Shown here in pieces: positions 16,801 to 60,660 of a stretch of DNA of 64,000 bases. Position 1 is the first letter of the stretch, and each line of letters begins with the position of its first letter. The notes beneath the pieces were generated by a model. The model was not told the DNA's origin and made no database searches. It saw nothing but the letters and a program-made list of their open reading frames with translations. The DNA comes from Podarcis filfolensis. Lineage: Eukaryota. The stretch lies in the NCBI GenBank assembly GCA_964270895.1, contig OZ185441.1. One strand, written 5' to 3'. A program made the translations under genes and the position numbers.

Positions 16801-19800
16801 TATTTTCCAATACTTTTCTTCCGTCAGAAGAGCTCTATTTGCGTGTTCTTGTCAGGCCAGGTCTGTTTAGATGCAAAGATTACAGAATATATAACCTGAT
16901 CTTTTAAAGACAGTGTGTGTTTGTTTTTCCAGATTTTCTACGCACCTTGATATAAGGCGGTGCAAAAGATGACAATAGCCACTTCACATTTGCATCTCCA
17001 TTATTTTCAATCTCTATGTACTTTTCTGGAAGAAGAAGTGCAGGCAAGTAATGTAAGTAACAGTTATTTATCATCATCATCAAACCTTTTATTGGCATCA
17101 CATACAAACATCCATAGCAAGTAACAGTTATTCTTATAAGGGCCTGTGAAGGATTTGGACCTTGTTTGCATGAACTGTGAGATAGTATATGGGAATGATT
17201 ATCTTCCTTGTCTATTCATTTGCGGGTTATATAATTAACTTGTGAAGCCTGGCACTGCCCTGGGGCTTAGCTAGGAAAGCGAGAATTTCTTTACAGACAA
17301 GGAGTATGGCAGGTCTCTTGGCTGAGAGGCTCCATGAGGTCCTATAACCTGGAATGGAAGAAGCTGTGACTGGTAGTCAGGCTAGAGGTTTCTTAGATCA
17401 AGGGGATTTCTGTGTGACGACGCAAAGACTTTTTAACCTGGGAAAGACATGCTACTCAAGAGTAGCATTCTTCTGAGAGCCCAGTGAGTTGAGGAGCTTC
17501 TTAAGTTCAGAGACAGTGGAAGACATACTAATCTACTTTATTTTGGTCCAAAAGGAACATATTAATTAGCAATTACTTATAACATTTGGTCAGGAGTGAT
17601 CATATTTATAGTCTTCTATAAAAAGGACTTTAAAGTGCTGCAAGATTGAGATGAATTACATGGAAAATAATGAAATTAATACAACTTCAGTTTGGAAACC
17701 TGCACACTTTCCAATTTGTTATTGGTTTAGTGTTATGTGTGAACTGTGTGAATGTGAATTTCAAGACTGTGAGTAGCTTTCATGCATGGCCAGTCATGCT
17801 TGTGTCACTGAAGTAATACATGTTTCATTTTCACCATTAGAAAACATTTTACTCAAAAAGATACCAGTCATACGCAAGACCGACGTTACCTGAGCTTTCC
17901 CCAGACTTTGTTTCAGGAAAAAACACAGTCCGATTCTTTACTTCAAGTTTTGTCGAAGATGGCTTTTGAAGTGGCCTTATGTGCATAATAGGAAGCTCAG
18001 GCTGTTGATGATGAACACCTACTTTGGCAACTGGTGAAACCGTTTCAGATTGCTTCTCAGAGATATTTTCCCGAATTTGGACCCTAACAAGCTATGCACA
18101 AGAAAGAAACAAAATCATAGTCAGTCAGTTTTATTGCACATAGCCAAAGGCTGCCGCAATGTACACAGAATTATTTGACAATTAAAAGAAAATATACTGA
18201 ATTGGTAAAAAAAGACTTAAAACATTTATATTATTAAAACATTACGTACTCTAAACAAAGCTATAAAAGTACCCCAATGTACAAATAAAAACATTAAACA
18301 GTAAAATTCATAAGCTAAAATCATCACATGGTCACGAATGTTAAAAACAATATCAATTAATACAGTGTGCAATTTATACTCAGAGTTTGGTGACAAAGAT
18401 AGAGCATAGCCTGAGGTAGATAGATAGGATCAAATAAATTCATCTCCTTTACAGTTAATGGCTACCTTGGCTATATAATTTGCTCTAATTTTCCTAGCAG
18501 CAGTTGCAAAAAGTGCTACCCGCCAGGTCACATACTTATCTGTGTCTGCAAGGAGATATAACATCATATCAAGGGGGTTCTGGTCAGGGGACCCTGTCAT
18601 TATAGGTACCAAAAATCTTTTTCTTGCATCATTATATAACGGACAGTGCAAGATATAATGCATAAGGTCCTCTACTTCAGAACATCCCCTAATACAAACA
18701 CGTTCGTTTTTTGGTATGCCTCTATGTCTCCCATCTCTATAAGCAGAGCTTATTGTATTTAGTCGTAGCTCTGTAAAAGCTTTTCGAAGCTGTGCAAAAG
18801 TCAATTCATTAAAATAAGAGATGTGTTCATTGACCTCTCTAAGTTTAAAATACAATGGGGCGCATGTGGATGTGCACATAGAGTTTAGATCGTTTTTAGT
18901 TGCCACTGCCCTTATGGTTCGTTTAAAAATATTTTTCTGTGAATATAAGGGGAGTTCTTTAATCTCAGTCACTGAGAGATCATATTTGCCCATCAGTTGG
19001 GCAGCATGATGTACCCAGTTTTTAAGGGGTAATCCATTTGAGAGCTCAATCAGGCATTTTTTTGGTAGCCTAGTGTTATCCATCTGTTGAACTCTAAACC
19101 AGTAGCAGAGAATTCTTTTATCTATTTGGCTCTCTATGCTCAACATGCGAGTTTCCAGCCTGACCATGGCAGATTGCACGTCTTTGGGTAAACCTAAAAG
19201 AACTCTTAAAAAATAATTCTGTGGGGGTTCCAGACCGGAGACCTTTGAGGTACCCCAAACCTCTGCACCATATAAAATCTGGGCCATTGTTTTTGCTTTA
19301 TACACAGATAGAGCCGGGTTGACCAGATTTCCACCTTTACATGCAGCAAATTTCAGAATGGCTTTTGCTGATTTAAAGGCTTGCAATTTAATATTGGATA
19401 GCTGTGTATTCCAAGATGCCGTTTCTGAATAAATCAATCCCAGATATTTAAACGTATTTACTTGGTTTATAATGTGTTCATCCAGGTGCCAAACATGCTT
19501 TTTAGAACGCTTCCCAAATACAATGACCTGCGTCTTATCATAGTTTATAGATAAAGCATTCCTCTTGCAATATGAACTTAATTTTGCAAGCAGCCGTCTC
19601 AGGCCCACCTGGGTTCTAGATACCAGTACTAGGTCATCAGCATACATTAAAACTGAAAGTTTTTGGTCGAGAATTGTGACAGGGGCAAACTGTAGGCCCT
19701 CCAGTTCTTTAACCATGTCATTAATATAAAAATTGAACAAGAAAGGTGCCAAAATGCATCCCTGTTTGACTCCAGTAGTGGTCTTAATTCTAGCGGTGAG

Positions 19801-22800
19801 GTGGCCAGCCAGATCCACCTTTACTTGTATTGATGTGTCAGTATATAATGTTTTGATGAGAAATAATAGACGGAGGTCTATATTTGTCTTTTCCAATTTT
19901 TGCCACAATGCGTGTCTTGGGACCGTATCAAAAGCTGACTTTAGATCGATAAAAGCAACATATAATTTTTGCTTCAAATTATGGATGTATTTACATAGCA
20001 GAAAGTTCAGCACAAAGCACTGGTCCAATGTGGATTTCCCTCTTTGGAAACCTGCCTGGACTTCAGAAATCACCTTATTTGTTTCTGCCCATTCTTCTAG
20101 TCTCCCAAGAAGGAGCCTGGCATATAGTTTGGAGGCTACATCTAACAAACTAATGGGTCTATAATTGGCAGGGTTTTTCTTATCGCCCTTTTTATATATT
20201 GGGGCAATTATACTTAACTTCCACCCTTCAGGTATACGACCTGAGCTGTTAATGTATGAAAACAATTTTGCAAATATGGGTGACCAGAAATCAGGTCTTA
20301 TCTTATAGATTTCCATTGGGATCATGTCTTCTCCTGGAGCTTTATTAGTATTTTGCAGTTACTGGTCTCAAGTTAATCCTACAGTTATCTCCCAGACTGG
20401 CTGGCCAGTGCATATGCTCAAAGCTGTTTTGTAACCAAGGACTCAAAAGCAAGGTGAAAATACTAAATGTAACACAGAAAATGTAACACATACATCTCTT
20501 AAACTTTTAAAACAACTTCCATACAAGAGCATAAGTTGTCCAACACTTGAAGAAATGCATTTCCCACTTTTCAACACATTTCCAAGACAGCTTACAATTA
20601 TTAAACAGAAATATTAGCACACACAATTTAAAAGAGCAAAAGTGACCAGAGATAAAATAAATATTTAACTGGACATGCCTTCAATAGAAACTACCAATGG
20701 ATTTGAGTTCTGCTGGCAAATATAGTTGGACACATACAATAAGGGAGCAGACTACTATTATATTAAGGTATTTTGCTATTTTATGCAAATAAAATAAGAA
20801 AAAATAATTAACCAACCAATCAACCAACAAAAGAGAAAGAGATGGAACACACACTTATGCCTGCCTAATATCATGTATGGGAGGCACAAAGAGAAAACCC
20901 GCTGAGGCCAGGTACAATCCTATAGAAGCAGGTTATTCCTCAGGTAAACTGACCCCAAGCAATTCTTCATTTACTCCCATAACTGCAAACTTCATCTAGG
21001 AAATGCAAACTACTCCCTTTAAAGCAATAGATGAAAGCTTAACTGACAAGATGAAATTAGTTTTCTAAAACCAAGGCATTTGGCAGAATTTTCATAACCA
21101 TAGACACTTATTTAAGCCACTTACTTTTTGTCCATTATCACAATGTACATAAATAAGGCCACTCCATGGAAAGATGGATTTCTTTTCTGCGAGTGATGGA
21201 TTTGGACTCACATAAATTGAAATGTTGCTTCTAGAAATAAGACGTCCAGTGCATTAATTTTAATATGCTAAATGAAATCAATGTTTCATTATTAGATCTG
21301 GTTACTGTTCTTCTTGACTTTTTTGTACACAATAGATGAAATTTTAGTATTCTATTAATTTAATATGAGGAATTGCAAACCCACGCCTATCTACAAGTCT
21401 AGCTTCATAAGGACAAGGAAAAACTCACATAGTGATGTTTCAATCACCAATGCATCTGCCATGTACACAGGGCTAGAATTATTAGGTCTATGATACAACA
21501 CTATCAGAAGCAAAATATCAAGCGGGGTGACAATATCCTTGCCAACTGTATAACTATTATTGTGACAGGTGCAATATATCAGCTTCAGATCATATGGTTG
21601 CAGCATTTTTCATAGAAGACTATGAAGTCATGTGTGAGAGAGGCTCTAACTTTAAGTTATTTAAATGTATCATAGTACTGTCAGCTCATAAAAAAACTGA
21701 AATACACTGCTAACTCAATCTGAATCATATATCTTGTATACATACAGTATTAATTTTTTCTGTGCTAACCACAAATACTTTAGGTTATCCTTAAGAATTA
21801 AAGGTTTTTCTCAGCATAAATAAAAACAAGGCTGTTTATTTTTTTAGGAAAGAAAAGCTTGACACTATGGACATAGCCAGAAACTCTTTTCACAACTGTA
21901 CAAAGATTCCTTCCCTTTCACCTTCATGCTATCTCAAGAGCTGGATGTAATCAGACTGACAGCGCAATCCCATACAATGGCACTGAGATGTAAGTCCCAT
22001 TGAATTCTACAGAAACTAGTTGTGCATGAGTGGATATAGGATTGCAACCTTAGTTACAGCAAAGGACAGTTTTCAAATTAATGGAATCATGGGGAAAAGT
22101 AATGAACAATGGAAGTACTTACCCTGGTTCAATAGTTCCATGCTGAGGTGTTACTGTCAGACAGTGAGCAGGCCACGATAGCTCAAATGTCAATGACCTG
22201 TTTGAGTTGTTACTTATTTGTGCATGTTTAGTAATCGCAGCTCCACCTTTTGAGATAAGAATTGCATGAATTCTCAGTTATCTTATAAGACATTTAAGTG
22301 CTATTTACAAAGCATTAACAACCGTATCAATTATGCAAATGTTACTTCCAAACTTACGCATGCAGTAATGAATCAAAGGCTTTTACATAATACAGCTATA
22401 GGAAAAAAGCATGTATTACTTTATTGATATCTAAATAGTGGGTTGGGAGTTATTTTGGAAAGTGGAAACTTTACAACCATTGACTAGGCTGCCAGCAACT
22501 GATTTGTTACCAACACTGAAACAAGGATCTTTTACTTCCTTGTAACAAATTAGAACTACAGTCATACCTTGGTTCTTGAACGGAATTGGTTCCAGAATTC
22601 GGATCAACTTCTGAAAACATTCAAAAACCAAGACGCGGCCTCTGATTGGCTGCAGGAGCTTCCTGCACTCAATCAGAAGCCGTGTCGGACGTTTGGCTTC
22701 CAAAAAATGTTCACAAACCAGAACACTCACTTCCAGGTTTGTGGCATTCAGGAGCCAAAACGTTCAAGTCACAAGGCATTCCAGAACCAAGGTATGACTG

Positions 22801-25800: not shown

Positions 25801-28800
25801 GAGAATGTTTATTGGCCCACAAACATTGTGCCCAGCAAGCCCAAATTAGGCCAGATAATAGGAACTACTTTGGTTATGTTGCAGGGAAGAGGGAAACACC
25901 TACATATGTCTGTTTCCTAGATGTACTGCTCTTACATGTTCATTGTGGGATTGTTGGAAGTTAGCAACTTGTTACGAAGCATTTGACTACCATGCACAAG
26001 GGGGGAGGGAGCAGGACAAAAAGCAAAGGCATTCTAGCACCCTCAAGTGCTAACCTGCCATAGCCAGAAAATGAAGCAAATCTGAGTGCTGAACACAGCT
26101 GCATACTCCAGTCTTTTCCAAACCTTTTGCAAACGTATTTTACAATAAGGGATTTTATAATCCAAAAAAGTGAACTTGTTCCTGTTCTTGATACCAGTGA
26201 CTGTTGATCTTTGAACACAGACAGAGTTGGCTATGTTATTTAATAACCACTAATACAGAGTTTTCCAAACTTTTCATGTTGGTGACACCCATTTTAGACA
26301 TGCATCCTTTCACGACACAGTAATTCAGTTTTACTAGCAAATGGAGGTTAAACTAACCCCTTTCTAGCCCCGGGAGCAGTGTGGGGAGCATTTGCATGAC
26401 ACAGCCAACACACCAATGTTTCACGACACACAGTTTGAAAAGCTCTGTAGTAATATTTAACAGCCAATATAAAAAAAACTTTTATTCTTTAAATATCCAT
26501 TCTAACCATCTGCTTCTTATTTCTTAAGAACAGATAGTAATGAATATACTTGTTATTTCCCAAAAAACATTTAGCCTTACCTGCGATACTGCTGTCTCAA
26601 AATTTCATCTCCATAGACAAAACAAATTGTAGACAACACTGGTGAATTACTTTGATCTTCAGTTGAATTAAATGTTACTGTAACTTTCTGAGAGGAAACA
26701 GTCAAATTTTGGTAAATTAATTTGTGGCACAATTGTTTGAATTATATGTAAGATTCACAAAGCAAGATTTTATGACACATTTTTGGGTGGGTGGGGGGAA
26801 TGTTAACAGCTTACACATTTTATAGGTCTTGCGTAATATATATATATTGTGACTTTCATATTACCTGCTGTGAACTTTCCTGAAGAACAAACTTTTCTGG
26901 GGAAACTCTCATCACATTTGGATCCATAACAATTATTTCACTTGAGTTCTTAAAGCACAGTGCTTTCACGTATGCAGCCCGACTCCCTGTATTTTGTACA
27001 GAAAAGGAAGCCTGTCTTGTTTTACCATTCAGCCCCGCTATATCATTCAGCCCCACTATGTATCTATTACAGTGTTTTTTAACATCTTCTAATCTCAGAT
27101 TGCTATTTCCTCCATATCCATACAATGGTATCTGAAAGGAAGAAAAACGTACATTTAGAAAAACAGGAATTGAAATAACCTTGCTCCCAGTTTCATTATC
27201 CCCAACTTTAATATTCAAAACAATCAAAGGATTCTCAAATTCTTTAAAATGTTCATATGTAGCACACCCTAAAGACCAAATGATGGAAAAGCAGGGTAAA
27301 AGTAGCTTAAGTAAGCAGAATAATGACTGGTTTCTGATGTGTACAAGTAACAGGATCTTTACAGGCAGGAAGATGCAAGTTGAAGGAAGTTGGCTGTGTT
27401 GGGAACAGCTAATTCATGGTGCCCTGAAATGGTTCTTCAAAAGGGTGCCCCTCACCTTCACCACTGAGAAAAGTGAGGAAAGCAAGCTTCTTTGGGAGCT
27501 ACTGACGTGCTTTTGAACTGCTAGGTTGGCAGGAGCTGGGATAGAGCAACGGGCGCTTACTCTGTCACAGGGATTCAAACTGCCGACCTTCTGATTGGCA
27601 AGCCCAATGGTTTAGACCGCAGCGCCATGCGCAGAGTACAACAAAATCAGGGGGGGCACCAGGTTGGTTACCCCTGACTTAAGACACTGAAAGGCCCAGA
27701 ACACGAAGAAAAAGATAATCCAAAGTGCATGGCAAGGGAGTTACTGAGATGTGGAGAGACTCTGTATCACTCTTAATATCAAGAAAACTACTGGAGTACA
27801 AAAAATAAAATCCAAGGAGGTTATAGTGGTCAATTTCTTGTCTGGCTTACAGTCAGAAAGTGTGAAGATGTTTCAAAACATCCTGAAGGACTTACTGCAA
27901 AAATGAACATAATAAATTCAGAAACATCCCATGAAATAGGATCAGTGTAAAAAGTAACTTACAGTGAACTTGATTCCTAGTTGAGATAGAAGACCAAGCT
28001 GTTTCATTTCAAGCTTTGCATACATACAAGTTAATCGAGTTGGTGTAAACATTAGACAGACAGAATAATCATGTTTTGGACGGATCTTGATTTCACAATT
28101 ATTGTACACATGTTCTCCAAGTTTCAACTGCAAATACACAAGAAAATCCACACAGCAAATTAATTTAATTCAGAAAATTATTTTAGAAGAGTTAAGATTT
28201 TAATGAACAGTTTAAACCCAAATAATTTGCTCCCATAATTCTATGACCTCTGAAGTATGCCACTCTATGGAAATGCTGACACAGTAAGAAGAAGTGTTTT
28301 TTATTCATTACTATTTTGCAACATTTTCCATGCACAGAGATAAATCTCAGTGCAGGAAAAATGTGTAAATGGCTGAACTGATCGCTCCATTCAAACTGGC
28401 ATCCTCTCTAACTTTCTTTGCACTTCCTTCTCTCCCCACCCACCCACATGAAATCAGGATGATCGCCTCATCCTGTTCTCCATCCCTAGTTATAAGAATC
28501 TTAAATTTGTTTCAAATTTGTGGTTTTAAAAGCCACTGAATATAATAATATTCCCCGCCCATCTGGCTGCGTCTCCCCAGCCACTCTGGGCCGCTTCCAA
28601 TCAAGTGTTAAAAACAATACAGCATTAAATATTAAAAACTTCCCTAAACAGGGCTGCCTTCAGATGTCTTTTATTTTCTACTATAACATTGCTCTGTGAA
28701 ATGCAGAGTATGTTAAAGAAAAATTCAAGATTCTTAAGTCTGATACAACAAAACTAGCAGCAAGCACTGCTGTAAGAGGGACACTGGCATAACAAAACCA

Positions 28801-46800: not shown

Positions 46801-49800
46801 GGAGATTGGCAGCAGCAATTGGGCAGGCGATTGGCGCTGTGGCAAGGCAGGCAGGTGACTGGCGGCTGCGGCAAATAGGTGGGTGGGTGGGCTGTCGGTG
46901 GCAGCAAGCGGGCAGACAATTGGTGGCTGGGGCGTGGTGTGTAATTAGCAATGGCTGTGGCAAGCAATCGGCAGTGGCAGGCAGGCGAGTGAGCAATTGG
47001 TGGAAGTGACCTCCCCCACCCCCCAAAAAGCTAAACAACTTAAATTTCTGGTTAAAAAAAATAGGGGTCGTCTTACACATGGGGGCATCTTATACATGGA
47101 AAAATACAGTATTTTAGACACACTGAAATATTTGTTTCAGAATTCTTAAAAGAAATGAAATACTTTTTAACAGATATCTATTTTGCTTTTGATATCTAAA
47201 TACTTACCCTTCCTCCCTCTCTGTCTTTTGCACTCACTTCACAAAGGGTAAATGTAGCAGATGCAAAGTGCGAGTCTTCCTTAATGCTTTCTTCTACATC
47301 CCCTAAGACAAGAAAAGTTAGCTTGTGTTCGCTAGAATACTGCTTACAATAAGCCAATAAAAGAAATGTATATTGCAAAGAACAAATTGCAAAGGTTAAT
47401 GCTGCGCCTAGCCATATTCAGATCATTATCCATGTTTTCATGCTGCTGTTCCTCCTCTTTCTGTTGTATACTTGCTTTGGCACAGATACTTCTATTAACC
47501 TGATTTGTTAACTCACATTAATGTAGAGTTCCCTGGCTTGGATGCAATGGGGAATTCTGGATTAATGCAAGGCAGGAGATCCAAGTCATTGGCCAATGTG
47601 AAAAGGGGAGAGAAATGTGTTTTATGACACTATGAATGATTGTCTGAACATGGCCATTCTAAGTGTAAACACCACACAAATGTAATTAAGCACACATCTA
47701 AGATCTATTTGGAATAACAAAAATCCTATGTAAAAGCAATTTAATTCTATCTGTACTCTAACTGCTTATTTTCATACCAAGCACAGTGTGTGAGGATAAT
47801 ACTAAGCTGCATAAGGAAACCTATGATTTCTAAGCCATCCTTCATGAAAAGATTCTGGGGTGATTTACATATCTGTACCATTAAATACCACACATAATAA
47901 AGCATTAAAACCAAAATTTTAAAATCCGTTAAAAAAACCTCTTGGCCTGCATATAGCCCCAACAGGGTTTTTGACCCACAGCCCAAAATGACTTTTAAAA
48001 GTTCAAACAAAAAAAAATTTTTTCTTTCCAGTAGCACCTTAAAGACCAACTAAGTTAGTTCTTGGTATGAGCTTTCGTGTGCATGCACACTTCGTCAGAC
48101 ACTTCGCGTGCATGCACACGAAAGCTCATACCAAGAACTAACTTAGTTGGTCTTTAAGGTGCTACTGGAAAGAAAAATTTTTTTTTTGTTTTGACTATGG
48201 CAGACCAACACGGCTACCTATCTGTAACTTTTAAAAGTTCCTATGCATCCCCAGTGTTACGATACCAAAAGCTTTTTGCGATACCTCTGTGTCTTTTTTT
48301 TTTTAAAAGAAATTTAAAATTAGCTATCCTCACTTTTAGACTTCAGCCATGCCCACTTTGACATGTTGCCCCTGGAGGGGTTGGCCATGAGTCAATCCTG
48401 CCCTCTGCATGAAAAATATGAGCTGCTCCTTACATTAATATGAAACAGCATGAAACCCTGCAGGACCCTGCAGCATGGTTGCCAGGGGGCAGAGCAGTCC
48501 TCTAATGCCATTTTGGAATATGCTCAATATAAAACACAGACCCCAATTTCTTGCCCTCACTTAAACTCTGTTGGCAGGCTAGCAGCATAGTCTGCAACTG
48601 TATGCTATATAGCGTTATCAGACTCGGCCCAATACATAATCAGGTTTTGGAAATGAAGTGAACAATTGGCTAACATCATGCGTGGCCAGCGTGATGCCCT
48701 TCAGGTGTTGTGAACAGTCCATTAGCCATGCTAGTGGGAAGTATGAGAAACTGTAGTTCACAATCTTTGGAGGCCACTAGGTTGGCTTCGCCTGATAAAA
48801 CAGCTACTTGCACAGAATTCTTAGGTTTCGGGAAATTATTAGGTTTACAAGAAATTACCTTGAAGAGTAGATGTCTGAGAATTCTGTTCATCAGTGTTTG
48901 TTCTAGATACATCAGATTGCCTCCACAAAGGAAGAGGTTGTCTCTTTTCCGGTGAAGTAATGTGATAACCAAAAGATGGCTGTAAGAGGAAACAACGTTC
49001 GTGATAAATGCTTTGAGAAACATGTAGTAATAGAAGCTGGCCAACACAGCGTCTAGATCTGGAAGATGTCAAACTTGCCTTCAAATATTTGCTTCTTTGC
49101 CCATGTTTCACAGTCCATTGTAGAAAATAACTCAACAGGTGTTTACAGGCACATGAGACTACCTCATGGACAAGTCAGTAATGGGCTACATAAAATGCAG
49201 TAGTTCTCCGGGGTCTCAGGCATATATCTCTTTCAGTCCTTCTATCAGAGATATTTTAATGAATTTGGACGGCACTAAACCTGCATTCTCTGTATGCAAA
49301 GCATATGCTCTATTACTCAGCGATGAGCCTGCTCATTTACTTATTTCTATTTTGTAGTCTGAGAGGAATCTTGTCAAAAACCAAGTATGTACATATAGTG
49401 GTAAAAGTATGTGGACAAGACAGCTACGTACCCGTTTCACATCACCTCCTCCTCCGAGACAACCAAGAGCCTCAGACCTCTGACCAAAGAACTCTCCTAG
49501 AGAGAGCCGTAGGTAACTAGCATCTTTGCTAAAGTCAGTTTGTGAACCTCTTAGTGGGTTGCCATTATTAACACATTTCCATGAAGAGTCCTCTAATCCA
49601 GAGGTATTTTGCAGTTCCATTTTCTCTTCCTGAAAATGTAGCAAACAAAAACGTCAAGAATTATCATTACCTATAGACAAAAGGATCATAATAGCCTCTT
49701 TACGATGTTTCCTACCTGAATAAATCTGTGTTCCCTTTCAAATTCTTCTTGATCTTGGTCAATCACAGCCATTGCTTCAGCTTTTCAAAGAGTAAGAGGG

Positions 49801-55800: not shown

Positions 55801-58630
55801 GTTTGACTCCAACTGATTGTCTGCAGCTTTGTTACAGCATTCCCTGAGAAAGTAAAAATGAAGGTTTTAATCTTAATTTTACAACTGCTTAGTAGCAGTT
55901 TAATATACTTAATGTCAGACAGCTCCACTTGCATTGTTTAGCTGAACCACACTAAGCTATATATTCCAGAATAACTTCCCTAGTGGTATCTTGTAGATTG
56001 GATCACACCCTGGATATTGTAGGCAGGAAGCTGCAACCGGCTGCATTTTATTTAAAAATATAATATAATAAAAGGCATGTTTATAAAACATATACAGTCA
56101 TTGTCAATTCTTAATAAGAGGTTTCCAACTCAAATTTAATTTGTGTTTAACATGTATAAATATTTTTATAGTTAAGTTTGCATATTAGCCTATAGCTTGC
56201 TGTTCCAAAATTTTACAAACTAAGTACATCTTTCCATAAACCAATTCTCATGTGTTTTCCTTCTAGCTTCAACATAGTAGGTGTATTTGAATAAAAGTTT
56301 TATTTCTCATGATCATTCTGAAATGGGAGGCAAGTTTAGCTTTCCAGCAACATATAAAGATTTTCTAGTGCTTCTCAACTGGTAATATCAATATTAGACT
56401 AACTTAAATGAAAAAGTTAACTAAGGCTAAAATCTGAAAAATATATTAGGATCTTACAGGTACTTTTTAACAAGCTAAGCCAGGAAGTAGTTATCTACTT
56501 CAACACTTAAAAAAAACCAACCACACCCAAGCTACGTTTATTAGCAGCATCCACCTAAACCTTTTTAACAGGAAACTTATGTTCCTTCAACAGGTCATAA
56601 TTTGGAAAAAAATGATATACACCATGCAAGCAAAAGATAGAACTTAATAGGGAGTACATAAGATTTGCTTCTAGAGTCATAAGTGGCCTTGAGTGGGTGA
56701 GTTTGCTAGATACAATCTGACCACAGGTTCTCTTGTGAGACAACTCCACATGTCACAGAAATTAGTCTAAGGAACAACCGAGTTGGGCTTTCATTACTAT
56801 CCGTAGGTTAATCTTAACATACATTTTAGGATTTAAAACATAAGGAGTATATTTCATGGTCTTAGCAGTCTAGAACAGGAATGAACCTTTGGACCTTCAG
56901 ATGTTGGACTGCAATTCTCATCAGCATGACCAATAGTCAGGTATTATGAAAGCTTAGGTCCAACATCTGGGGGACTATAGTATTATTATATTTATTAAAT
57001 TTATATACCACTTTTCACAGGGCAGTTTACAGTATAAAAGCACAAAAATACATAACAAATAACAAACAAAACAATAAAAAACAGAGTTTAAAAGACCATA
57101 GGTTCTTTAATTAGCTGAAGGCTGGAAGAAGAGGAATGTTGTTTTTTCTGTTGGCAAAAGATATATAATGAAATTACACCCCCATCTCTGCTGTTAAAAG
57201 TGATAAGACATGCAGCAACATTTAAATCAGGCATTCATGAAACCTATTTGTCAGAGAATATCTCTTGAAAGTTAATTTTAAAGTTGAATCAAAAAGTTCT
57301 AATCTATAAGCAGAAGGGAGTCTTCTGTGAGCAGAAATGTATCTTTGGATCCAACACAAGATATAACATTAAATTATATAATCTACTTCTTACACAGTAT
57401 CCTGAAAGTTAAGATTCTTTCTTGGATCAGAATCAGATTCACCACTACAGGAAGATGCTAATGGAGCAGGGAATCTATTGTCCATGTAAGACACTTCATC
57501 ATATTGTCTGTAATACAGAGAAAACAAAACCATTATTTTGCAAGTTCTCAGCTCTGTTGTTTAGAAGACCATTTCAGTGATCAGGAATGTCTTATGATGT
57601 GGCACTACCTCCTCACATTAACCACACGATAAATTTGTCTCCAGTAGTAATCCAAGGTAAAATCAAATGAGGAAGGTACTCTAGTCCTTAGTGTCTCATA
57701 GTTAGAGCAGTCCTCTTCTTCTTCTTCTTTTGAAAAAGGAACATATTTGCTTCCCCTCCCCCCACCATAGTCTTCAGCTTTCAGCATCTTGCCTAATAAT
57801 AGCAGCTTATGAGGTGGCTCACTAAATGATACTGCTGATGTCAATGGCCATTGCTAGGAACAACTATATGTCTTCATAGTGCTAAGCCAGCAGCCCCCAA
57901 GCTGCTTCACAACTCCGCCTGGAAAGGGTACTGGAGTGTTCTTCCCCATAAAGCAGTGGTCAGCAGCAGTTACTAGTAGTCTCCACCTAACTGCCTCAAG
58001 AGCAGCTACTGTTACTCAACCCTGTATATTACAGCTACTAGCAAAAATGGCTTTAATATCTAGGGATTCAGGTATTCACCTCTACACACAAGAGGGTGAC
58101 TTAGATAATATGCTAATATGTCTGGGACCTGCTCCAGATCTCACCACTTGGGAGGAGAGGAAGCAGTCTTCAAACAGCCCCTTGCCAGTACCTGCTTTAC
58201 TTGCCTCCAAGTTACTACACAATGTCTGACAGTTCAGCACATAATGATGAGCTTGCTGAATTCCGTTTCAACAAATTTTATGTAAGATTTCCAATTATCT
58301 AGATTCTATTTTTATCATGAATCATACACTGATGGAAGTAGAAAGCCATGCCTGGAAATAGTTTCAGATTTAGAAATTACCAGCCATGAGCAATCCTTCA
58401 GTCAATACATTCTTCCCTACACTCACCTACGAATTTCTAGTCATGAACTAACAAACGTCTTACCCGTCATGAGAGCCAGTTTTCCGTCTGGCTTCAGTTG
58501 AAGCAGCAACTGGTATACCAAGAGTTGATGAAATTGTGATATTGTCAAAAATGTCACTGGTGCAGCCAGTTACAGAGTTGAGCAAAACACTTGGAAACGT
58601 TTCATCTGCAATACATTTGAAGTCTTCCAT
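10686..58630 (-). CDS. CEP192: Centrosomal protein 192 (CEP192), complete 46-coding-exon model, ~2475 aa
   Basis: Manually spliced exons (listed individually) total 7428 nt, all GT-AG with matching phases. Recognised motifs: MEDF..IA.E.FPS N-terminus, PLK4-binding acidic YFEQL segment, Aurora-A-binding VVYQNEDGRWVTDLAYYTSFN, YLRLSLGEFFGQRSEALGCLGGG, FRPSTSPL, C-terminal Spd2/ASH-type domains. Confidence 0.96.
11349..11486. mobile_element. hAT-type palindromic MITE
   Basis: Long internal inverted repeat; 8-bp TSD TTCTAGAG at 11341-11348 and 11487-11494. Confidence 0.88.
11618..11676 (-). CDS. CEP192: CEP192 coding exon 45
   Basis: LKFRCPREPFYIKHSHYTL; 59 nt. Confidence 0.96.
12146..12254 (-). 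CDS. CEP192: CEP192 coding exon 44
   Basis: KGVHAQEDIYKFPPTRIGESSTLKITVRNYSSFSNK; 109 nt. Confidence 0.95.
12771..12889 (-). CDS. CEP192: CEP192 coding exon 43
   Basis: GILGNEDFKNEDSTAALVKVSVRDVTLRRDYPNSSEHKM; 119 nt, phase 0-2. Confidence 0.87.
14136..14255 (-). CDS. CEP192: CEP192 coding exon 42
   Basis: VVVTFLPRDRGHYSQFWDLECHPLHESRLKDKHRLQFCGM; 120 nt. Confidence 0.96.
16229..16324 (-). CDS. CEP192: CEP192 coding exon 41
   Basis: GLDDSGEVYRATYTAFRCSLLSGILKAHGEEK; 96 nt. Confidence 0.96.
16946..17025 (-). CDS. CEP192: CEP192 coding exon 40
   Basis: KYIEIENNGDANVKWLLSSFAPPYIK; 80 nt. Confidence 0.96.
17069..17118 (-). mobile_element. 50-bp LINE 3'-end footprint with 14-bp TSD
   Basis: AAGTAACAGTTATT at 17055-17068 and 17119-17132; insert reads ...GCCAATAAAAGGTT(TGA)n on minus. 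Confidence 0.8.
17890..18091 (-). CDS. CEP192: CEP192 coding exon 39
   Basis: LVRVQIRENISEKQ...KPSSTKLEVKNRTVFFPETKSGESS; 202 nt. Confidence 0.94.
18119..20343 (-). mobile_element. 5'-truncated non-LTR retrotransposon (LINE; RTE-X-like, clade unconfirmed) in the intron between coding exons 38 and 39
   Basis: RT ORF2 remnant starting KAPGED; ~310-nt 3' UTR; AATAAA at 18130-18135; (ACTG)n tail. No endonuclease domain, no clear TSD. Confidence 0.93.
18430..20325 (-). CDS. LINE ORF2 reverse transcriptase plus C-terminal Cys/His knuckle (631-aa uninterrupted remnant)
   Basis: Motifs PIYKKGD..NYRPISLL, QAGF, AFIDLKSAFD, GVKQGCILAPFLF, YADD, FKYLG; C-terminal RVCIRGCSEVEDLMHYILHCPLY. Confidence 0.93.
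   Translation of the reverse strand: MIPMEIYKIRPDFWSPIFAKLFSYINSSGRIPEGWKLSIIAPIYKKGDKKNPANYRPISLLDVASKLYARLLLGRLEEWAETNKVISEVQAGFQRGKSTLDQCFVLNFLLCKYIHNLKQKLYVAFIDLKSAFDTVPRHALWQKLEKTNIDLRLLFLIKTLYTDTSIQVKVDLAGHLTARIKTTTGVKQGCILAPFLFNFYINDMVKELEGLQFAPVTILDQKLSVLMYADDLVLVSRTQVGLRRLLAKLSSYCKRNALSINYDKTQVIVFGKRSKKHVWHLDEHIINQVNTFKYLGLIYSETASWNTQLSNIKLQAFKSAKAILKFAACKGGNLVNPALSVYKAKTMAQILYGAEVWGTSKVSGLEPPQNYFLRVLLGLPKDVQSAMVRLETRMLSIESQIDKRILCYWFRVQQMDNTRLPKKCLIELSNGLPLKNWVHHAAQLMGKYDLSVTEIKELPLYSQKNIFKRTIRAVATKNDLNSMCTSTCAPLYFKLREVNEHISYFNELTFAQLRKAFTELRLNTISSAYRDGRHRGIPKNERVCIRGCSEVEDLMHYILHCPLYNDARKRFLVPIMTGSPDQNPLDMMLYLLADTDKYVTWRVALFATAARKIRANYIAKVAINCKGDEFI
21125..21230 (-). CDS. CEP192: CEP192 coding exon 38
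   Basis: SNISIYVSPNPSLAEKKSIFPWSGLIYVHCDNGQK; 106 nt. Confidence 0.96.
22123..22246 (-). CDS. CEP192: CEP192 coding exon 37
   Basis: GAAITKHAQISNNSNRSLTFELSWPAHCLTVTPQHGTIEP; 124 nt. Confidence 0.96.
22559..22800. mobile_element. Tc1/mariner-type MITE, second family
   Basis: Perfect 18-bp TIR CAGTCATACCTTGGTTCT, TA TSD. Confidence 0.9.
23095..23264 (-). CDS. CEP192: CEP192 coding exon 36
   Basis: PGVPEKSNMTLDVLPVKGPHG...ENWTLQPEFLILTAPSQ; 170 nt. Confidence 0.95.
23713..23854 (-). CDS. CEP192: CEP192 coding exon 35
   Basis: VYDLPQHSFDIQYFFMNMRRIIVSAV...VALE; 142 nt. Confidence 0.93.
24864..25170 (-). mobile_element. Sauria SINE
   Basis: Recognised CpG-rich body (GGAAACGCCGTTTACCTTCC, TTTCGAACTGCTAGGTTGGCAGGAGC) with an ACCTTT-type tail at the left end. 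Confidence 0.88.
25269..25378 (-). CDS. CEP192: CEP192 coding exon 34
   Basis: AVQQNPEQVQKMLPANNPVINVKFDEEFPGEELVTE; 110 nt. Confidence 0.94.
26581..26687 (-). CDS. CEP192: CEP192 coding exon 33
   Basis: KVTVTFNSTEDQSNSPVLSTICFVYGDEILRQQYR; 107 nt. Confidence 0.94.
26865..27131 (-). CDS. CEP192: CEP192 coding exon 32
   Basis: IPLYGYGGNSNLRLEDVKK...FSVQNTGSRAAYVKALCF...PEKFVLQESSQQ; 267 nt. Confidence 0.96.
27503..27627 (-). mobile_element. Sauria SINE, partial 5' portion
   Basis: Shares GTGCTTT.GAACTGCTAGGTTGGCAGGAGC.GGG...GAGCAACGGG with the 24864 copy. Confidence 0.8.
27963..28127 (-). CDS. CEP192: CEP192 coding exon 31
   Basis: LKLGEHVYNNCEIKIRPK...FTPTRLTCMYAKLEMKQLG...GIKFT; 165 nt. 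Confidence 0.96.
28541..28670 (-). mobile_element. LINE (L2-like) 3' end fragment
   Basis: Near-identical reverse complement of 43111-43236, ending in an (ATT/AAT)n tail. Confidence 0.7.
29044..29134 (-). CDS. CEP192: CEP192 coding exon 30
   Basis: QQKLILRNNSPSITQQLRLLIRGQDQDCFQ; 91 nt. Confidence 0.96.
29969..30145 (-). CDS. CEP192: CEP192 coding exon 29
   Basis: VLKILVLPSGPEYKVTVKGEV...PILANKQFLTWGGIQLGRT; 177 nt. Confidence 0.96.
30227..30342 (-). CDS. CEP192: CEP192 coding exon 28
   Basis: ALEPDSGISVNPEDLVLIPGEEQEVTVVFSPKDYRNAE; 116 nt. Confidence 0.94.
31253..31345 (-). CDS. CEP192: CEP192 coding exon 27
   Basis: TLYMSARMGLSTRQQLPLKNAGNIKVDLKIL; 93 nt. Confidence 0.95.
31434..31570 (-). 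CDS. CEP192: CEP192 coding exon 26
   Basis: DSLGPADEYFARIDVEVDCPEPAKILSIPLHARSGTPRIYAPKGLQ; 137 nt. Confidence 0.95.
32573..32823. mobile_element. Tc1/mariner-type MITE related to 22559-22800, opposite orientation
   Basis: TIR CAGTGGTACCTTGGTTGTCAAAC, TA TSD; shares internal GTGTTCTGGTTTGTGAACATTTTTTGGAAGC with the reverse complement of the 22559 copy. Confidence 0.9.
32856..32916 (-). CDS. CEP192: CEP192 coding exon 25
   Basis: DPDVLVVWVQFHAPSKCITS; 61 nt. Confidence 0.93.
33398..33538 (-). CDS. CEP192: CEP192 coding exon 24
   Basis: NAVAWRCFTFSKEPV...APSVISHVMNARSDGQ; 141 nt. Confidence 0.95.
33793..33962 (+). mobile_element. tRNA-derived squamate SINE (Squam-like), degenerate
   Basis: Head GGGCTGTAGCTCAGT (A box), TTTGCATGC, then AGCTGGGAAAAGACTCCTG body. 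Confidence 0.65.
35165..35290 (-). CDS. CEP192: CEP192 coding exon 23
   Basis: VEAGTTNHLDFGDMPSGSWKALPLKLTNKTCARVPVRLVIYA; 126 nt. Confidence 0.95.
36667..36897 (-). CDS. CEP192: CEP192 coding exon 22
   Basis: MDPLKHRCFLFKNK...SIASWPFTADADTIVQAQALA...PDIE; 231 nt. Confidence 0.96.
37366..37514 (-). CDS. CEP192: CEP192 coding exon 21
   Basis: RVKVPEEVTFPNACCVGLTSHTVLSILNPSERWLQVSIGLLSIMLDGEK; 149 nt. Confidence 0.96.
37896..38706 (-). CDS. CEP192: CEP192 coding exon 20
   Basis: NNRASGWGTTIVWTSPTSALEE...TTPFAQQYLRSLPS...VPFGL; 811 nt. Confidence 0.93.
39458..39941. mobile_element. Older hAT-type non-autonomous element
   Basis: Degenerate CAGGG...CCTG termini and GGCC-containing subterminal motif; TSD degenerate. 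Confidence 0.55.
40229..40319. mobile_element. Partial copy (one end) of the 2700-family MITE
   Basis: ...CAGTTTCAGCTTAAGAACGGACCTCCGGAAC..ATTAAGTTC..AACC.GAGGTACCACTG|TA. Confidence 0.75.
40531..40699 (-). CDS. CEP192: CEP192 coding exon 19
   Basis: ADADCPATTS...HSLGRLTFVSATEKTLQNLTLSSPETCQ; 169 nt. Confidence 0.88.
42455..42602 (-). CDS. CEP192: CEP192 coding exon 18
   Basis: SDDEQYSFRPSTSPLIHSSPNEATGTALL (PLK1-docking ST motif region); 148 nt. Confidence 0.93.
43111..43236 (+). mobile_element. LINE (L2-like) 3' end fragment
   Basis: CCGCCCAGAGTGGCTGGGGAGACGCAGCCAGATGGGCGGGGTATAAATAATAAATTATTATT terminus. Confidence 0.7.
44568..44798 (-). CDS. CEP192: CEP192 coding exon 17
   Basis: YSESEGRTSK...NNEKRIAFENISADNQKDV; 231 nt, phase 1-1. 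Confidence 0.85.
45695..46334 (-). CDS. CEP192: CEP192 coding exon 16
   Basis: EKCEDRK...ILSISTIAYAIANASVSTDPAQLAALMTKASNKNRE...FDIEKYLRKT; 640 nt. Confidence 0.94.
46674..47109. mobile_element. TA-flanked non-autonomous DNA transposon (mariner/pogo-type) with degenerate GC-rich internal repeats
   Basis: Ends CCATATTTTTCCATGTATAAGA / TCTTATACATGGAAAAATACAG, TA on both sides; GGCA/GGCGG-rich core at ~46786-47005. Confidence 0.85.
47208..47302 (-). CDS. CEP192: CEP192 coding exon 15
   Basis: DVEESIKEDSHFASATFTLCEVSAKDREGGR; 95 nt, phase 1-0, donor GTAAGT. Confidence 0.78.
48005..48226. mobile_element. Penelope-like retroelement terminal-repeat insertion in inverted configuration, 14-bp TSD
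   Basis: TSD ACTTTTAAAAGTTC at 47991-48004 and 48227-48240; ~85-bp inverted arms (~48005-48088 / ~48108-48190); hammerhead motif typical of PLE terminal repeats. Confidence 0.8.
48065..48102 (-). ncRNA. Minimal type-I hammerhead ribozyme motif
   Basis: GUGU-CUGACGA-A-GUGUG(CAUG)CACAC-GAAA-GC-UC^AUAC: complete core, 5-bp stem II, palindromic AGCU in place of stem III, 4-bp stem I with one G-U, predicted cleavage between 48069 and 48068. Confidence 0.8.
48859..48979 (-). CDS. CEP192: CEP192 coding exon 14
   Basis: PSFGYHITSPEKRQPLPLWRQSDVSR; 121 nt. Confidence 0.94.
49432..49629 (-). CDS. CEP192: CEP192 coding exon 13
   Basis: EEKMELQN...KDASYLRLSLGEFFGQRSEALGCLGGGGDVKR; 198 nt. Confidence 0.96.
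49716..49780 (-). CDS. CEP192: CEP192 coding exon 12
   Basis: SEAMAVIDQDQEEFEREHRFIQ; 65 nt. Confidence 0.94.
50900..51031 (-). CDS. CEP192: CEP192 coding exon 11 (Aurora A-binding region)
   Basis: DPPHDVVYQNEDGRWVTDLAYYTSFNKEQ; 132 nt. Confidence 0.95.
51459..51678 (-). CDS. CEP192: CEP192 coding exon 10
   Basis: DATNVTNCELKLDSLYF...LADAYLSPSAYKGSEQYECTAE; 220 nt, phase 0-1. Confidence 0.85.
52395..52476 (-). CDS. CEP192: CEP192 coding exon 9
   Basis: CITAGCHDCSEEDGISVKTKAVSSSRN; 82 nt, phase 2-0, donor GTAAGT. Confidence 0.72.
52738..52907 (-). CDS. CEP192: CEP192 coding exon 8
   Basis: VECGKPSLNSGLSDSSETFPAE...VIDGDIL; 170 nt; weak donor AT|GTACTG, but its phase 2 matches the next exon. 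Confidence 0.68.
53075..53218 (-). CDS. CEP192: CEP192 coding exon 7
   Basis: EKFQIPNICQAARTGSPVASDEELYEF...TARQE; 144 nt, phase 0-0. Confidence 0.8.
53869..54020 (-). CDS. CEP192: CEP192 coding exon 6 (PLK4-binding acidic region)
   Basis: YEIGDEEFCDGQLETYFEQLVLPEMQMEDVEE, matching human DDIDDEMFYDDHLEAYFEQLAIPGM as recalled; 152 nt. Confidence 0.92.
54288..54417 (-). CDS. CEP192: CEP192 coding exon 5
   Basis: AVSLEHGQKRI...FIENEQPLSFASLEGHST; 130 nt, phase 0-1. Confidence 0.83.
54640..54830 (+). mobile_element. Degenerate CR1 LINE ORF2 (RT) fragment
   Basis: KDKMVKYKREEVLLMKEQHGFCKDKACLST resembles CR1 (QHGFCKGKSCLTN). Confidence 0.7.
54891..54943 (-). CDS. CEP192: CEP192 coding exon 4
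   Basis: DLTARIFASFEKDNEDYK; 53 nt, phase 1-0; supplies the phase change needed between its neighbours. Confidence 0.72.
55692..55843 (-). CDS. CEP192: CEP192 coding exon 3
   Basis: ECCNKAADNQLESNQQGSNVLQQK...LQHLE; 152 nt, phase 2-1, open frame, good splice sites; divergent sequence. Confidence 0.78.
57394..57507 (-). CDS. CEP192: CEP192 coding exon 2
   Basis: QYDEVSYMDNRFPAPLASSCSGESDSDPRKNLNFQDT; 114 nt, phase 2-2. Confidence 0.88.
58464..58630 (-). CDS. CEP192: CEP192 coding exon 1 (exon starts 58653; ATG at 58630)
   Basis: MEDFKCIADETFPSVLLNSVTGCTSDIFDNITISSTLGIPVAASTEARRKTGSHD; acceptor TTTAG, donor GG|GTAAG. Confidence 0.95.
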
Positions 58631-59619
58631 TATACTGTTTTCTCATAGCTGCCCTAAAGGGTAAGAGAGAGAGGTTACACATAGGCAGCAAGATAATAGT
58701 CAAGAAATGTTCTATTTTATCAGTACTTTTAAGTCACATTGTCTAATCTTTGTTTCCTAGATGGTAAGTGTACAGTCAGAGACTGACCTGTCATCAAGCT
58801 CCTAAATTGCTACAGGAGCTCAATAACTGAGAAACAAAACTGAAAAGCTGTGCAGTTGTTTGCTATGACTGCCAACACAAGCGTAGCACAGTATCCCTAC
58901 ATCTTCCACAAAGACAGACACTGAGTAAATTCTTTCACAATACGCTCTAGAAATTCCAAACGCAAAAGGAACACACATTTGAAGGACTGGAACAGGTACA
59001 AGCTCTTTGAAAGCAAAATGCCAGAGCAGTCCAAGATTAGAGTTACATCAATCACAATTGCAGAACGCAACTTTTACTGTATTTTTATTTTCAAAATCAA
59101 GTTATACAAAGCACCAAAACACACATGCATGTTGTCAATCATTTAACAAAATAAATTCTTTTCAGGAACACAGCTCATTAGATTGCTGACTACACACAGT
59201 GCAGGTGCTATATTTAGCTGTTTAAGCCGATTGGCATGAGTTTATTGCTGTTTCTAGAGGCTGCCAGCACCTGAAGTGGGGTACAGCAGAGAGAATGGTG
59301 TATGTACTCAATTTTTCATTAATGCTCTTTCAACCAAAACCTTTACTATGGGAGTGGGGGAATGTAAGAAGCACCATCAACTCTCCTGCGTACAAAATAA
59401 TTCTGAATCACAACTAAGTTTTGGTCAGCTCCAAATATATTTTTTCACACCAAGGCAAGTACTTCACAAATCTGCAAGATAAATTAAGACTATTTCTTTT
59501 ACGACAATTAACTGCCTTGTTGAATTCACAGGAATTACTTTTTAAAAGAAAAGGGCTCTTTTCTGCAACTGTTCCGGAGCCATATGGGTCAGTGTTGCTA
59601 GCTTCAAAGTAGTCTTCCA

Positions 59620-60660
59620 TAGCACATTAGCAGGGCACGGGGCCGGAGCAGCCCTCTACACATGCTCAGAAACACTCCCTGACACCAGCACCGTCTAGCA
59701 TCGCATTCATTCACAGTTTGCTGCGGAGCCGAGATGTGGCTCAGCTTTATCCCCGTTATCGACCTTCTTATGGGCAACTTATAGGAAAGGAGTATGGACA
59801 CTTCCGAGGCAGAGCAGAAGGAGGAAAGGAAGAGGAACTCTGTCCCCACCGCGGAATATAAATAACTGCGCCAGGCACACGTGGAGGGCGCCGATTTCTA
59901 GCGTTTTTCCTGCTAAGGACGGCGCTGGGCTGAAGCGAAGCGCCGCGAGGGAAGCAAAGGGGCGCGCCTTTTTTCCCCCAAGTTCCCCCTGAAATGGGCT
60001 CCCGCCCCTCCGTCCTCTCTTCTCGGGACACCCGTCAAAAAAAGCTTCCCCGACACTCGCTTTAGGCGCCGACACAGGAGGGAGGGGAAGCGGGAAACAA
60101 GACAGAATGGAAACCGCCTCTAAAACCACCTAAAACGGCCGCTTCCGAGTGAGAAAAACATGCCCCCCTCAAAAAAAAAAAAACACCCAACCCCCTCCCC
60201 CTTCCCCACAAACCGCTCACCCAAAGCAAAAGCGAGCGCTGGAACGGCAGCTCTCGGGCGCCTCCGGGCACGCGCATTGATGCGCGAGGACACCGTTCGG
60301 AAACGTCACGGCAACCCCAACAAGCGTCGAACTCTGGAAGGAGGAGGGAGGGAGGGGGAAAGAGAGAGAAACGTCCCCCTCCTCTATTTTCTTGTAAGTG
60401 CGCACGCGCACGCCCCTTACCTGGCGCCTAGGAAACTCGCTTTTGGATTTCGGCGGGCGGGGTGGGGTGGGGGCAGGCGGAGGGCGGGATCGGGGAGGAA
60501 ACACATGCGAATTCTATTGGTTTACGAGAACGGAACGAAGGAAAAGCGCAGCGCTTCTCTGATTGGACGAAAGGGCGGTGACACGCTACTTTCAAACAGT
60601 CCGGGAAAGAGAGCTGTGGTGGAGTTTGCGGAGGTGACTTATAACGATCTCGCTGCGAGT
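59620..60660. promoter_or_regulatory. CEP192: CpG island / CEP192 promoter
   Basis: GC- and CpG-rich against a CpG-poor background. GGGCGG boxes at ~60455-60490 and ~60572; minus-strand CCAAT at 60516-60520 and 60562-60566; TTTGAA (CHR-like) at 60591-60596; TTTCCCGG (E2F-like) at 60601-60608; NRF1-like GCGCACGCGCA at ~60400-60410. Confidence 0.85.
60421..60510 (-). other. CEP192: Probable non-coding exon 1 of CEP192 (5' end approximate)
   Basis: Consensus donor CAG|GTAAGG at 60421/60420 inside the CpG island, downstream of two CCAAT boxes; TSS cannot be fixed from sequence. Confidence 0.65.

Follow-up and report, generated by a model that had tools for sequence, protein, structure and literature searches.

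Penelope-like elements (PLEs) of metazoans carry minimal hammerhead ribozymes (min-HHRs), which are present in reptiles. In these ribozymes, helix II is longer than helix I, which has 4-5 bp (Cervera & de la Pena 2014, PMC4209133). Their traits include an unpaired nucleotide between A9 and G10.1, palindromic positions 15.2/16.2 and a requirement for dimers. Cleavage is not detectable for minimal hammerheads as monomers; it is low for dimers or trimers, and for dimers this holds even at high Mg2+ (PMC4209133). Many of these motifs are dispersed singly; close pairs on opposite strands also occur, with a dual case in Schistosoma (PMC4209133). PLE hammerheads of the minimal type I are also attributed to Lunse et al. 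2016, going by the citation of that work in PMC6765202. PLE insertions are heavily 5'-truncated, are accompanied by an adjacent inverted 5'-truncated copy and bear a tail of 30-40 bp at one end (Craig et al. 2021, PMC8557442). The enzyme of the anole element Poseidon prefers AT-rich targets and, in vitro, cuts each of the two DNA strands and extends them (Frangieh et al. 2024, PMC11167929). It uses two internal start sites on its RNA for reverse transcription, and their spacing equals the tail of ~34 nt. The Poseidon hammerhead cleaves only with the element's own protein, and no RNA-seq reads end at its cleavage site (PMC11167929). Here, we describe a 222-bp insert with a hammerhead motif in an intron of CEP192, found in a stretch of 64,000 nt from Podarcis filfolensis (contig OZ185441.1 of assembly GCA_964270895.1; this whole 64-kb stretch is referred to as the window). 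Very probably, the insert is a dead-on-arrival relic, left in head-to-head form by a PLE or by a derivative that is non-autonomous and uses PLE machinery. Its hammerhead is a passenger, namely the normal minimal type-I motif of the PLE family, and the insert is an ordinary repeat relic that is unlikely to regulate CEP192.

The insert covers positions 48005-48226. It is bracketed by an exact 14-nt direct repeat, ACTTTTAAAAGTTC, at 47991-48004 and 48227-48240. This is the target-site duplication, and 11 of its 14 positions are A or T. Between the two repeats are two copies of the same segment in head-to-head orientation. Arm A (48005-48107, sense on the minus strand) is a 5'-truncated copy which contains the complete hammerhead and has a proximal 3' boundary that is devoid of a tail, as seen in the alignment and by blastn. 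Arm B (48108-48192, sense on the plus strand) was delineated by the alignment and as part of the inverted repeat; this second copy is broken off inside helix II of the hammerhead. It is extended by a one-sided, AC-rich tail of 34 nt (48193-48226, plus strand), which has no counterpart on the arm A side and is unique in the window. The copies have a length of 103 nt (arm A) and 119 nt (arm B plus tail), and the insert consists of just two 3' ends. Downstream of the predicted hammerhead cleavage site, the two arms continue for 64 and 98 nt before they end. All reading frames contain stop codons across the insert, and no open stretch exceeds ~32 codons.

The inverted repeat pairs 48000-48088 with 48108-48196 (89 nt, 97% complementary, with a spacer of 19 nt). 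When compared in sense orientation, arm A and arm B are identical in 83 of 84 positions (98.8%, blastn). The sole difference is one base at an A/T homopolymer boundary, given that the junction between the arms is placed at 48107/48108. This placement is our reading, the junction being ambiguous within the palindromic helix II. The left boundary of the element is uncertain by up to 5 nt because the inverted repeat enters the duplication (48000-48004 versus 48192-48196). As the arms are nearly identical and the duplication is exact, the data point to a single, fairly recent insertion event.

The first 12 nt of the duplication (ACTTTTAAAAGT; 47991-48002 and 48227-48238) form a perfect palindrome. 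Target and insert are both symmetric, the latter through its head-to-head arms, and this would agree with a dimeric PLE enzyme that cuts the two strands.

The hammerhead motif is located on the minus strand at 48102-48065. It starts with GUGU, the 5' strand of helix I, and continues with CUGACGA, an additional A, helix II (GUGUG and CACAC, connected by CAUG), GAAA, GC and finally UC^AUAC, with the predicted cleavage between 48069 and 48068 (C17 is at 48069). The core (CUGACGA, GAAA and UC) spans 48098-48069 and contains all conserved core positions of the min-HHR (C3 U4 G5 A6 N7 G8 A9, G12 A13 A14, A15.1/U16.1 and H17). The additional A is bulged (48091), and the neighboring G (48090) pairs with C 48077, which is the G10.1-C11.1 closing pair. 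Helix I (GUGU/AUAC) comprises 4 bp, including one G-U pair, and is mismatched beyond these; it is thus short and open. Helix II has 5 bp, as compared to 4 bp in the canonical form, plus the CAUG loop, and its entire 14 nt (GUGUGCAUGCACAC) form a perfect palindrome. The AGCU at 48073-48070 is a 4-nt palindrome, so that positions 15.2/16.2 are palindromic and would permit a helix III between two molecules; loop 3 is absent.

A strict descriptor, modeled on the min-HHR as defined in the literature, asks for 4 bp or more in helix I, followed by CUGANGA, a bulge of 1 nt that may be missing, a G-C-closed helix II of at least 4 bp, GAAA, complementary 15.2/16.2 positions and UH. This descriptor has a single match on the two strands of the window and none in 200 dinucleotide-preserving shuffles. 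A much looser descriptor also has this site as its sole match in the window, as compared to a mean of 0.035 per shuffled window. Because the match is unique while the shuffles lack it, the motif is considered a non-chance string. The minimal type-I hammerhead (48065-48102, minus strand) is this sole match, and its isolated minimum free energy fold contains helices I and II. CUGANGA is absent from arm B, and the descriptor detects no hammerhead motif on the plus strand of the window.

A pseudo-tandem structure is seen around helix II. Two adjacent stretches of 29 nt within 48061-48118 (plus strand) are 76% identical; read on the minus strand, helix II followed by CGAA and GUGUCUGACGAAG is similar to helix II followed by CGAAAGCUCAUACCAAG. 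A tandem source was one candidate reason; more probably, the similarity results from the palindromic nature of helix II.

The host gene was identified by similarity of two open reading frames (ORFs) to CEP192 structures. The minus-strand ORF at 50844-51047 matches PDB 8pr7_C (a CEP192 fragment; E 3.3e-12) and contains a coding exon upstream of the insert in the sense of transcription. The minus-strand ORF at 26859-27227, which contains a coding exon downstream of the insert, matches PDB 7ptb_A (CEP192; E 4.7e-23). As these minus-strand exons flank both sides, the insert is located in a CEP192 intron, with the hammerhead on the strand of the pre-mRNA. The stops in every frame and the nature of the insert as a repeat insertion also identify it as intronic. 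Arm B is transcribed before the hammerhead of arm A because it has the higher coordinates on a minus-strand RNA.

Much of this had been described in an earlier note on this stretch, and the description is reliable. The note reported a 222-bp insert with an exact 14-bp duplication, and ACTTTTAAAAGTTC is indeed found at both ends. The complete hammerhead core on the minus strand at 48102-48065, with a predicted cut at 48069/48068, reads as given there, and both palindromes (AGCU and the 14-nt stem II) are perfect. The position in a CEP192 intron, on the sense strand, follows from the exons on both sides. Also confirmed is the statement that a second, inverted copy lacks the CUGA core, is antisense to GAAA and the cleavage site, and is transcribed first. 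The assignment as a Penelope-type minimal type-I hammerhead agrees with the literature, where the bulged A, AGCU and the need for dimers are on record for the family (PMC4209133).

Every unusual feature of the insert has its counterpart among the published PLE hallmarks. Apart from the hammerhead, these are an adjacent inverted 5'-truncated copy, a one-sided tail of 34 nt and an exact duplication of an AT-rich target. The annotation of a lacertid genome includes Penelope elements. Non-autonomous PLE derivatives are the subject of a 2026 preprint, and ~43% of such elements are found in introns in Xenopus.

The following origin is the most likely one. The enzyme of the element would nick an AT-rich palindromic target in both strands, at positions separated by 14 bp, and each free 3'-OH would prime reverse transcription inside the element RNA. 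Arm A would result from a start at the proximal site, which leaves no tail, and arm B plus tail from a start ~34 nt further downstream. Both cDNAs would stop after ~100-120 nt, close to the hammerhead, and would then become linked head to head, either at the palindromic helix II or next to it, with repair yielding the 14-bp duplication. Being a 14-nt palindrome, helix II could pair two identical cDNAs. An origin from a single snap-back cDNA was also considered. It was rejected, as arm A has the core but no tail, while arm B has the tail but no core. Because core and tail sit on different arms, two independent initiations would be required.

Both conformers of the RNA were folded, as had been proposed in the earlier note, and the hairpin is favored over the hammerhead-competent state. 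The RNA of the insert forms a hairpin of -167 kcal/mol for 261 nt (z = -26). For the 222-nt insert alone, the value is -155.8 kcal/mol versus -114.1 kcal/mol when a hammerhead-competent state is forced, so that formation of helices I and II with an open core costs 41.7 kcal/mol. On the CEP192 RNA, arm B is the antisense of GAAA, the cleavage site and 64 nt downstream thereof in arm A. The predicted hairpin of ~86-90 bp in the CEP192 intron would bury GAAA, C17 and the 3' strand of helix I. The isolated hammerhead monomer does not exceed its shuffles in stability (z = 0.18). When two molecules (48055-48110, minus strand) are folded together, -33.2 kcal/mol are obtained, as compared to -16.2 kcal/mol (2 x -8.1) for the monomers. 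In this in silico dimer, the palindromic helix II pairs between the molecules, which is preferred over a helix III contact via AGCU. A domain-swapped helix II dimer would accordingly be the preferred dimer in folding models of the min-HHR variant found here.

A lone motif needs a partner copy because the A15.1-U16.1 pair, closed by only 2 nt, cannot form. A second complete motif is absent from the CEP192 RNA within the window, as judged by the descriptor. As the motif is complete only once, lacks a stable helix III and competes with the hairpin, self-cleavage of the CEP192 pre-mRNA should be negligible. The RNA of the insert most likely leaves together with the spliced intron.

A number of points weigh against interpretation of the insert as an inactive PLE relic. 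The assignment to PLEs would be one by architecture and by hallmarks from the literature, not by homology. PLEs code for a telomerase-like reverse transcriptase and a GIY-YIG endonuclease; the two copies in the insert are cut down to ~100-120 nt. No second copy of an arm, of the tail or of the ribozyme region exists elsewhere in the window. A 23-mer taken from the region of the hammerhead and a 20-mer of the tail were also compared, by scans for exact matches, with metagenome and viral contigs, and no related copy was revealed. There is no ORF downstream of the motif: translation from the AUG of loop II would meet a stop after 9 codons. As the motif lacks an ORF, unlike that of Poseidon_Ac, the source may be a PLE from another clade or a derivative that is non-autonomous. 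The search with hammerhead covariance models, which had been suggested in the earlier note, came out negative: the Rfam hammerhead models have no match at the gathering score in the whole window, and none at E<=10 in subsequences of 431 nt and 73 nt. In our reading, this reflects that the models require a stem III, which is missing in the min-HHR class, and the core is not impugned by it. Finally, the inactivity of the motif, like the mechanism of insertion, is inferred, the part that is shown being the anatomy, the strand, the non-chance nature of the motif and the folding energies.

The scans resulted in one candidate, which was rejected. Positions 3323-3342 of a TARA ocean metagenome contig (L001) are a chance match, as only the 20-mer from the tail is in common and the context is GC-rich and looks like coding sequence.

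The present relevance of the insert may be that of a double-stranded RNA. The intronic hairpin of ~86 bp might be edited by ADAR or give rise to small RNAs, and the processing of the CEP192 pre-mRNA might be influenced. This is compatible with the PLE relic explanation, to which it would be a side effect, and we consider it a tentative option that is on balance unlikely to apply. It draws on the stability of the hairpin (-167 kcal/mol, z = -26) and on matches to Rfam microRNA-precursor models with E ~1e-7. These matches are far under the gathering scores and show merely that there is a long hairpin; being generic, they also speak against a specific role, and an effect on CEP192 is pure conjecture. 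The Rfam models for microRNAs, snoRNAs and sRNAs as a whole gave only generic long-hairpin matches, all of them far under their gathering scores. That the near-perfect duplex may serve as a substrate for ADAR or for small-RNA production is plausible, as a generic property of intronic inverted repeats.

According to the earlier note, the intron holds a self-cleaving motif that a duplex with arm B could silence, which may be why the motif is tolerated. In the corresponding model, the hammerhead is functional and arm B is an antisense lock, selected as such, that silences or regulates it. We regard this as very unlikely, even though the core is intact on the sense strand, arm B is transcribed first and the active fold is disfavored by 41.7 kcal/mol. 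As a thermodynamic entity the lock is real (-155.8 versus -114.1 kcal/mol), but it does not hold up as a feature tied to this gene, being the usual inverted copy of PLEs (PMC8557442). Insertion of PLEs yields such inverted arms in general, and with arms that are identical in 83 of 84 positions, there is no sign of locus-specific selection. On its own, the motif cannot form helix III (one A-U pair with a 2-nt GC loop), and the RNA has no second complete motif. There is probably little for a lock to act on, and a lock is also not needed to explain tolerance by CEP192, since there is a single motif, published monomers do not cleave and the anole motif depends on the PLE protein. It is hardly to be expected that the CEP192 pre-mRNA is cleaved under special conditions, in which case arm B would be a lock in the real sense, acting conditionally on a centrosome gene that is essential. 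Such conditions would be an opening of the hairpin (by ADAR editing or helicases), a PLE protein or the RNA of another copy as helix III partner, or a helix II domain-swapped dimer.

It is most improbable that the insert is a DNA transposon with terminal inverted repeats, be it a miniature inverted-repeat transposable element or one of the foldback type, and that its hammerhead-like string is coincidental: the near-perfect inverted repeat is flanked by a direct duplication and a reverse transcriptase linked to the insert is absent from the window, but the ends are asymmetric (with the 34-nt extension only on the right, so that the repeats are not symmetric), the duplication of 14 bp is longer than those of cut-and-paste families, for which a short, family-specific duplication is expected, and the strict descriptor, expected less than 0.005 times per window, matches exactly at the center of the insert, where every extra min-HHR trait is present.

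Additional features were noted in the window. A GC-rich island at 59500-60500 has 52-61% GC, as compared to a window average of ~39%. Just downstream of it, in minus-strand sense, is an ORF at 58460-58630 that starts with MEDFKCIADETF. The two are probably the promoter and the first coding exon of CEP192. Positions 18433-20325 (minus strand) code for an intact ORF of 631 aa with a reverse-transcriptase domain (Pfam RVT_1, E 1.1e-41). This is probably a LINE ORF2 remnant inside CEP192, in sense orientation. It was ruled out as the parent of the insert, as a GIY-YIG domain is absent.

As a PLE relic, the insert has little individual significance, being a further member of a family for which hammerheads, inverted copies and tails are already described. 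It has modest value as a clean in vivo footprint, at a palindromic target, of the behavior reported for the anole PLE in vitro: both target strands were primed, with two start sites that are 34 nt apart. It also provides a warning. The constellation "intact sense-strand ribozyme plus antisense lock" will recur across the genome for mechanistic, not functional, reasons.

Among the systems to which the insert may be compared, the amniote conserved intronic hammerheads HH9 and HH10 (Rfam Hammerhead_HH9 and HH10) were reportedly described in 2010 (de la Pena & Garcia-Robles). What they have in common with the motif in CEP192 is their sense orientation within an intron of a protein-coding gene. However, HH9 and HH10 are canonical, with a stable helix III, loop-loop contacts and orthologous conservation, whereas the motif described here is minimal, is part of a young repeat copy and has no Rfam match. 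The twin-priming inversions of L1, reportedly described by Ostertag and Kazazian in 2001, resemble the insert in that both nicked strands prime and an inverted segment is found within one target-site duplication. They differ in that the L1 segments originate from non-overlapping parts of the RNA, whereas here the starts are nearly the same. A true inverted repeat is found here because both copies start at nearly the same place.

The closest counterparts are the min-HHRs of PLEs, with which the motif shares the CUGANGA/GAAA/UH core, the bulge between A9 and G10.1, the G10.1-C11.1 pair, the open helix I of 4 bp, the lack of loop 3, and AGCU. It is distinguished by its helix II, which has 5 bp plus CAUG and is a perfect palindrome over all 14 nt, and it is known here without a linked PLE ORF. 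The insert as a whole has the architecture of PLE insertions with their pLTR (PMC8557442), namely an inverted 5'-truncated neighbor, a one-sided tail and strong 5' truncation. Both copies are extremely short in this case (103 and 119 nt).

Poseidon_Ac from Anolis carolinensis has no sequence similarity beyond the core, in a comparison made by eye only, and its ORF begins at helix II, where the frame in the CEP192 insert closes after 9 codons. When its consensus is inspected by eye, the layout is nevertheless the same: CUGAGGA, a bulged U, helix II, GAAA, CG and UC^A. In Poseidon_Ac, the two 3' ends lie ~55 and ~89 nt from the cleavage site; the values here are similar (64 and 98 nt). Poseidon_Ac also resembles the insert in its tail of ~34 nt and its AT-rich target. 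As its enzyme cuts and extends the two strands, head-to-head copies of the kind found in the CEP192 intron are to be expected from it.

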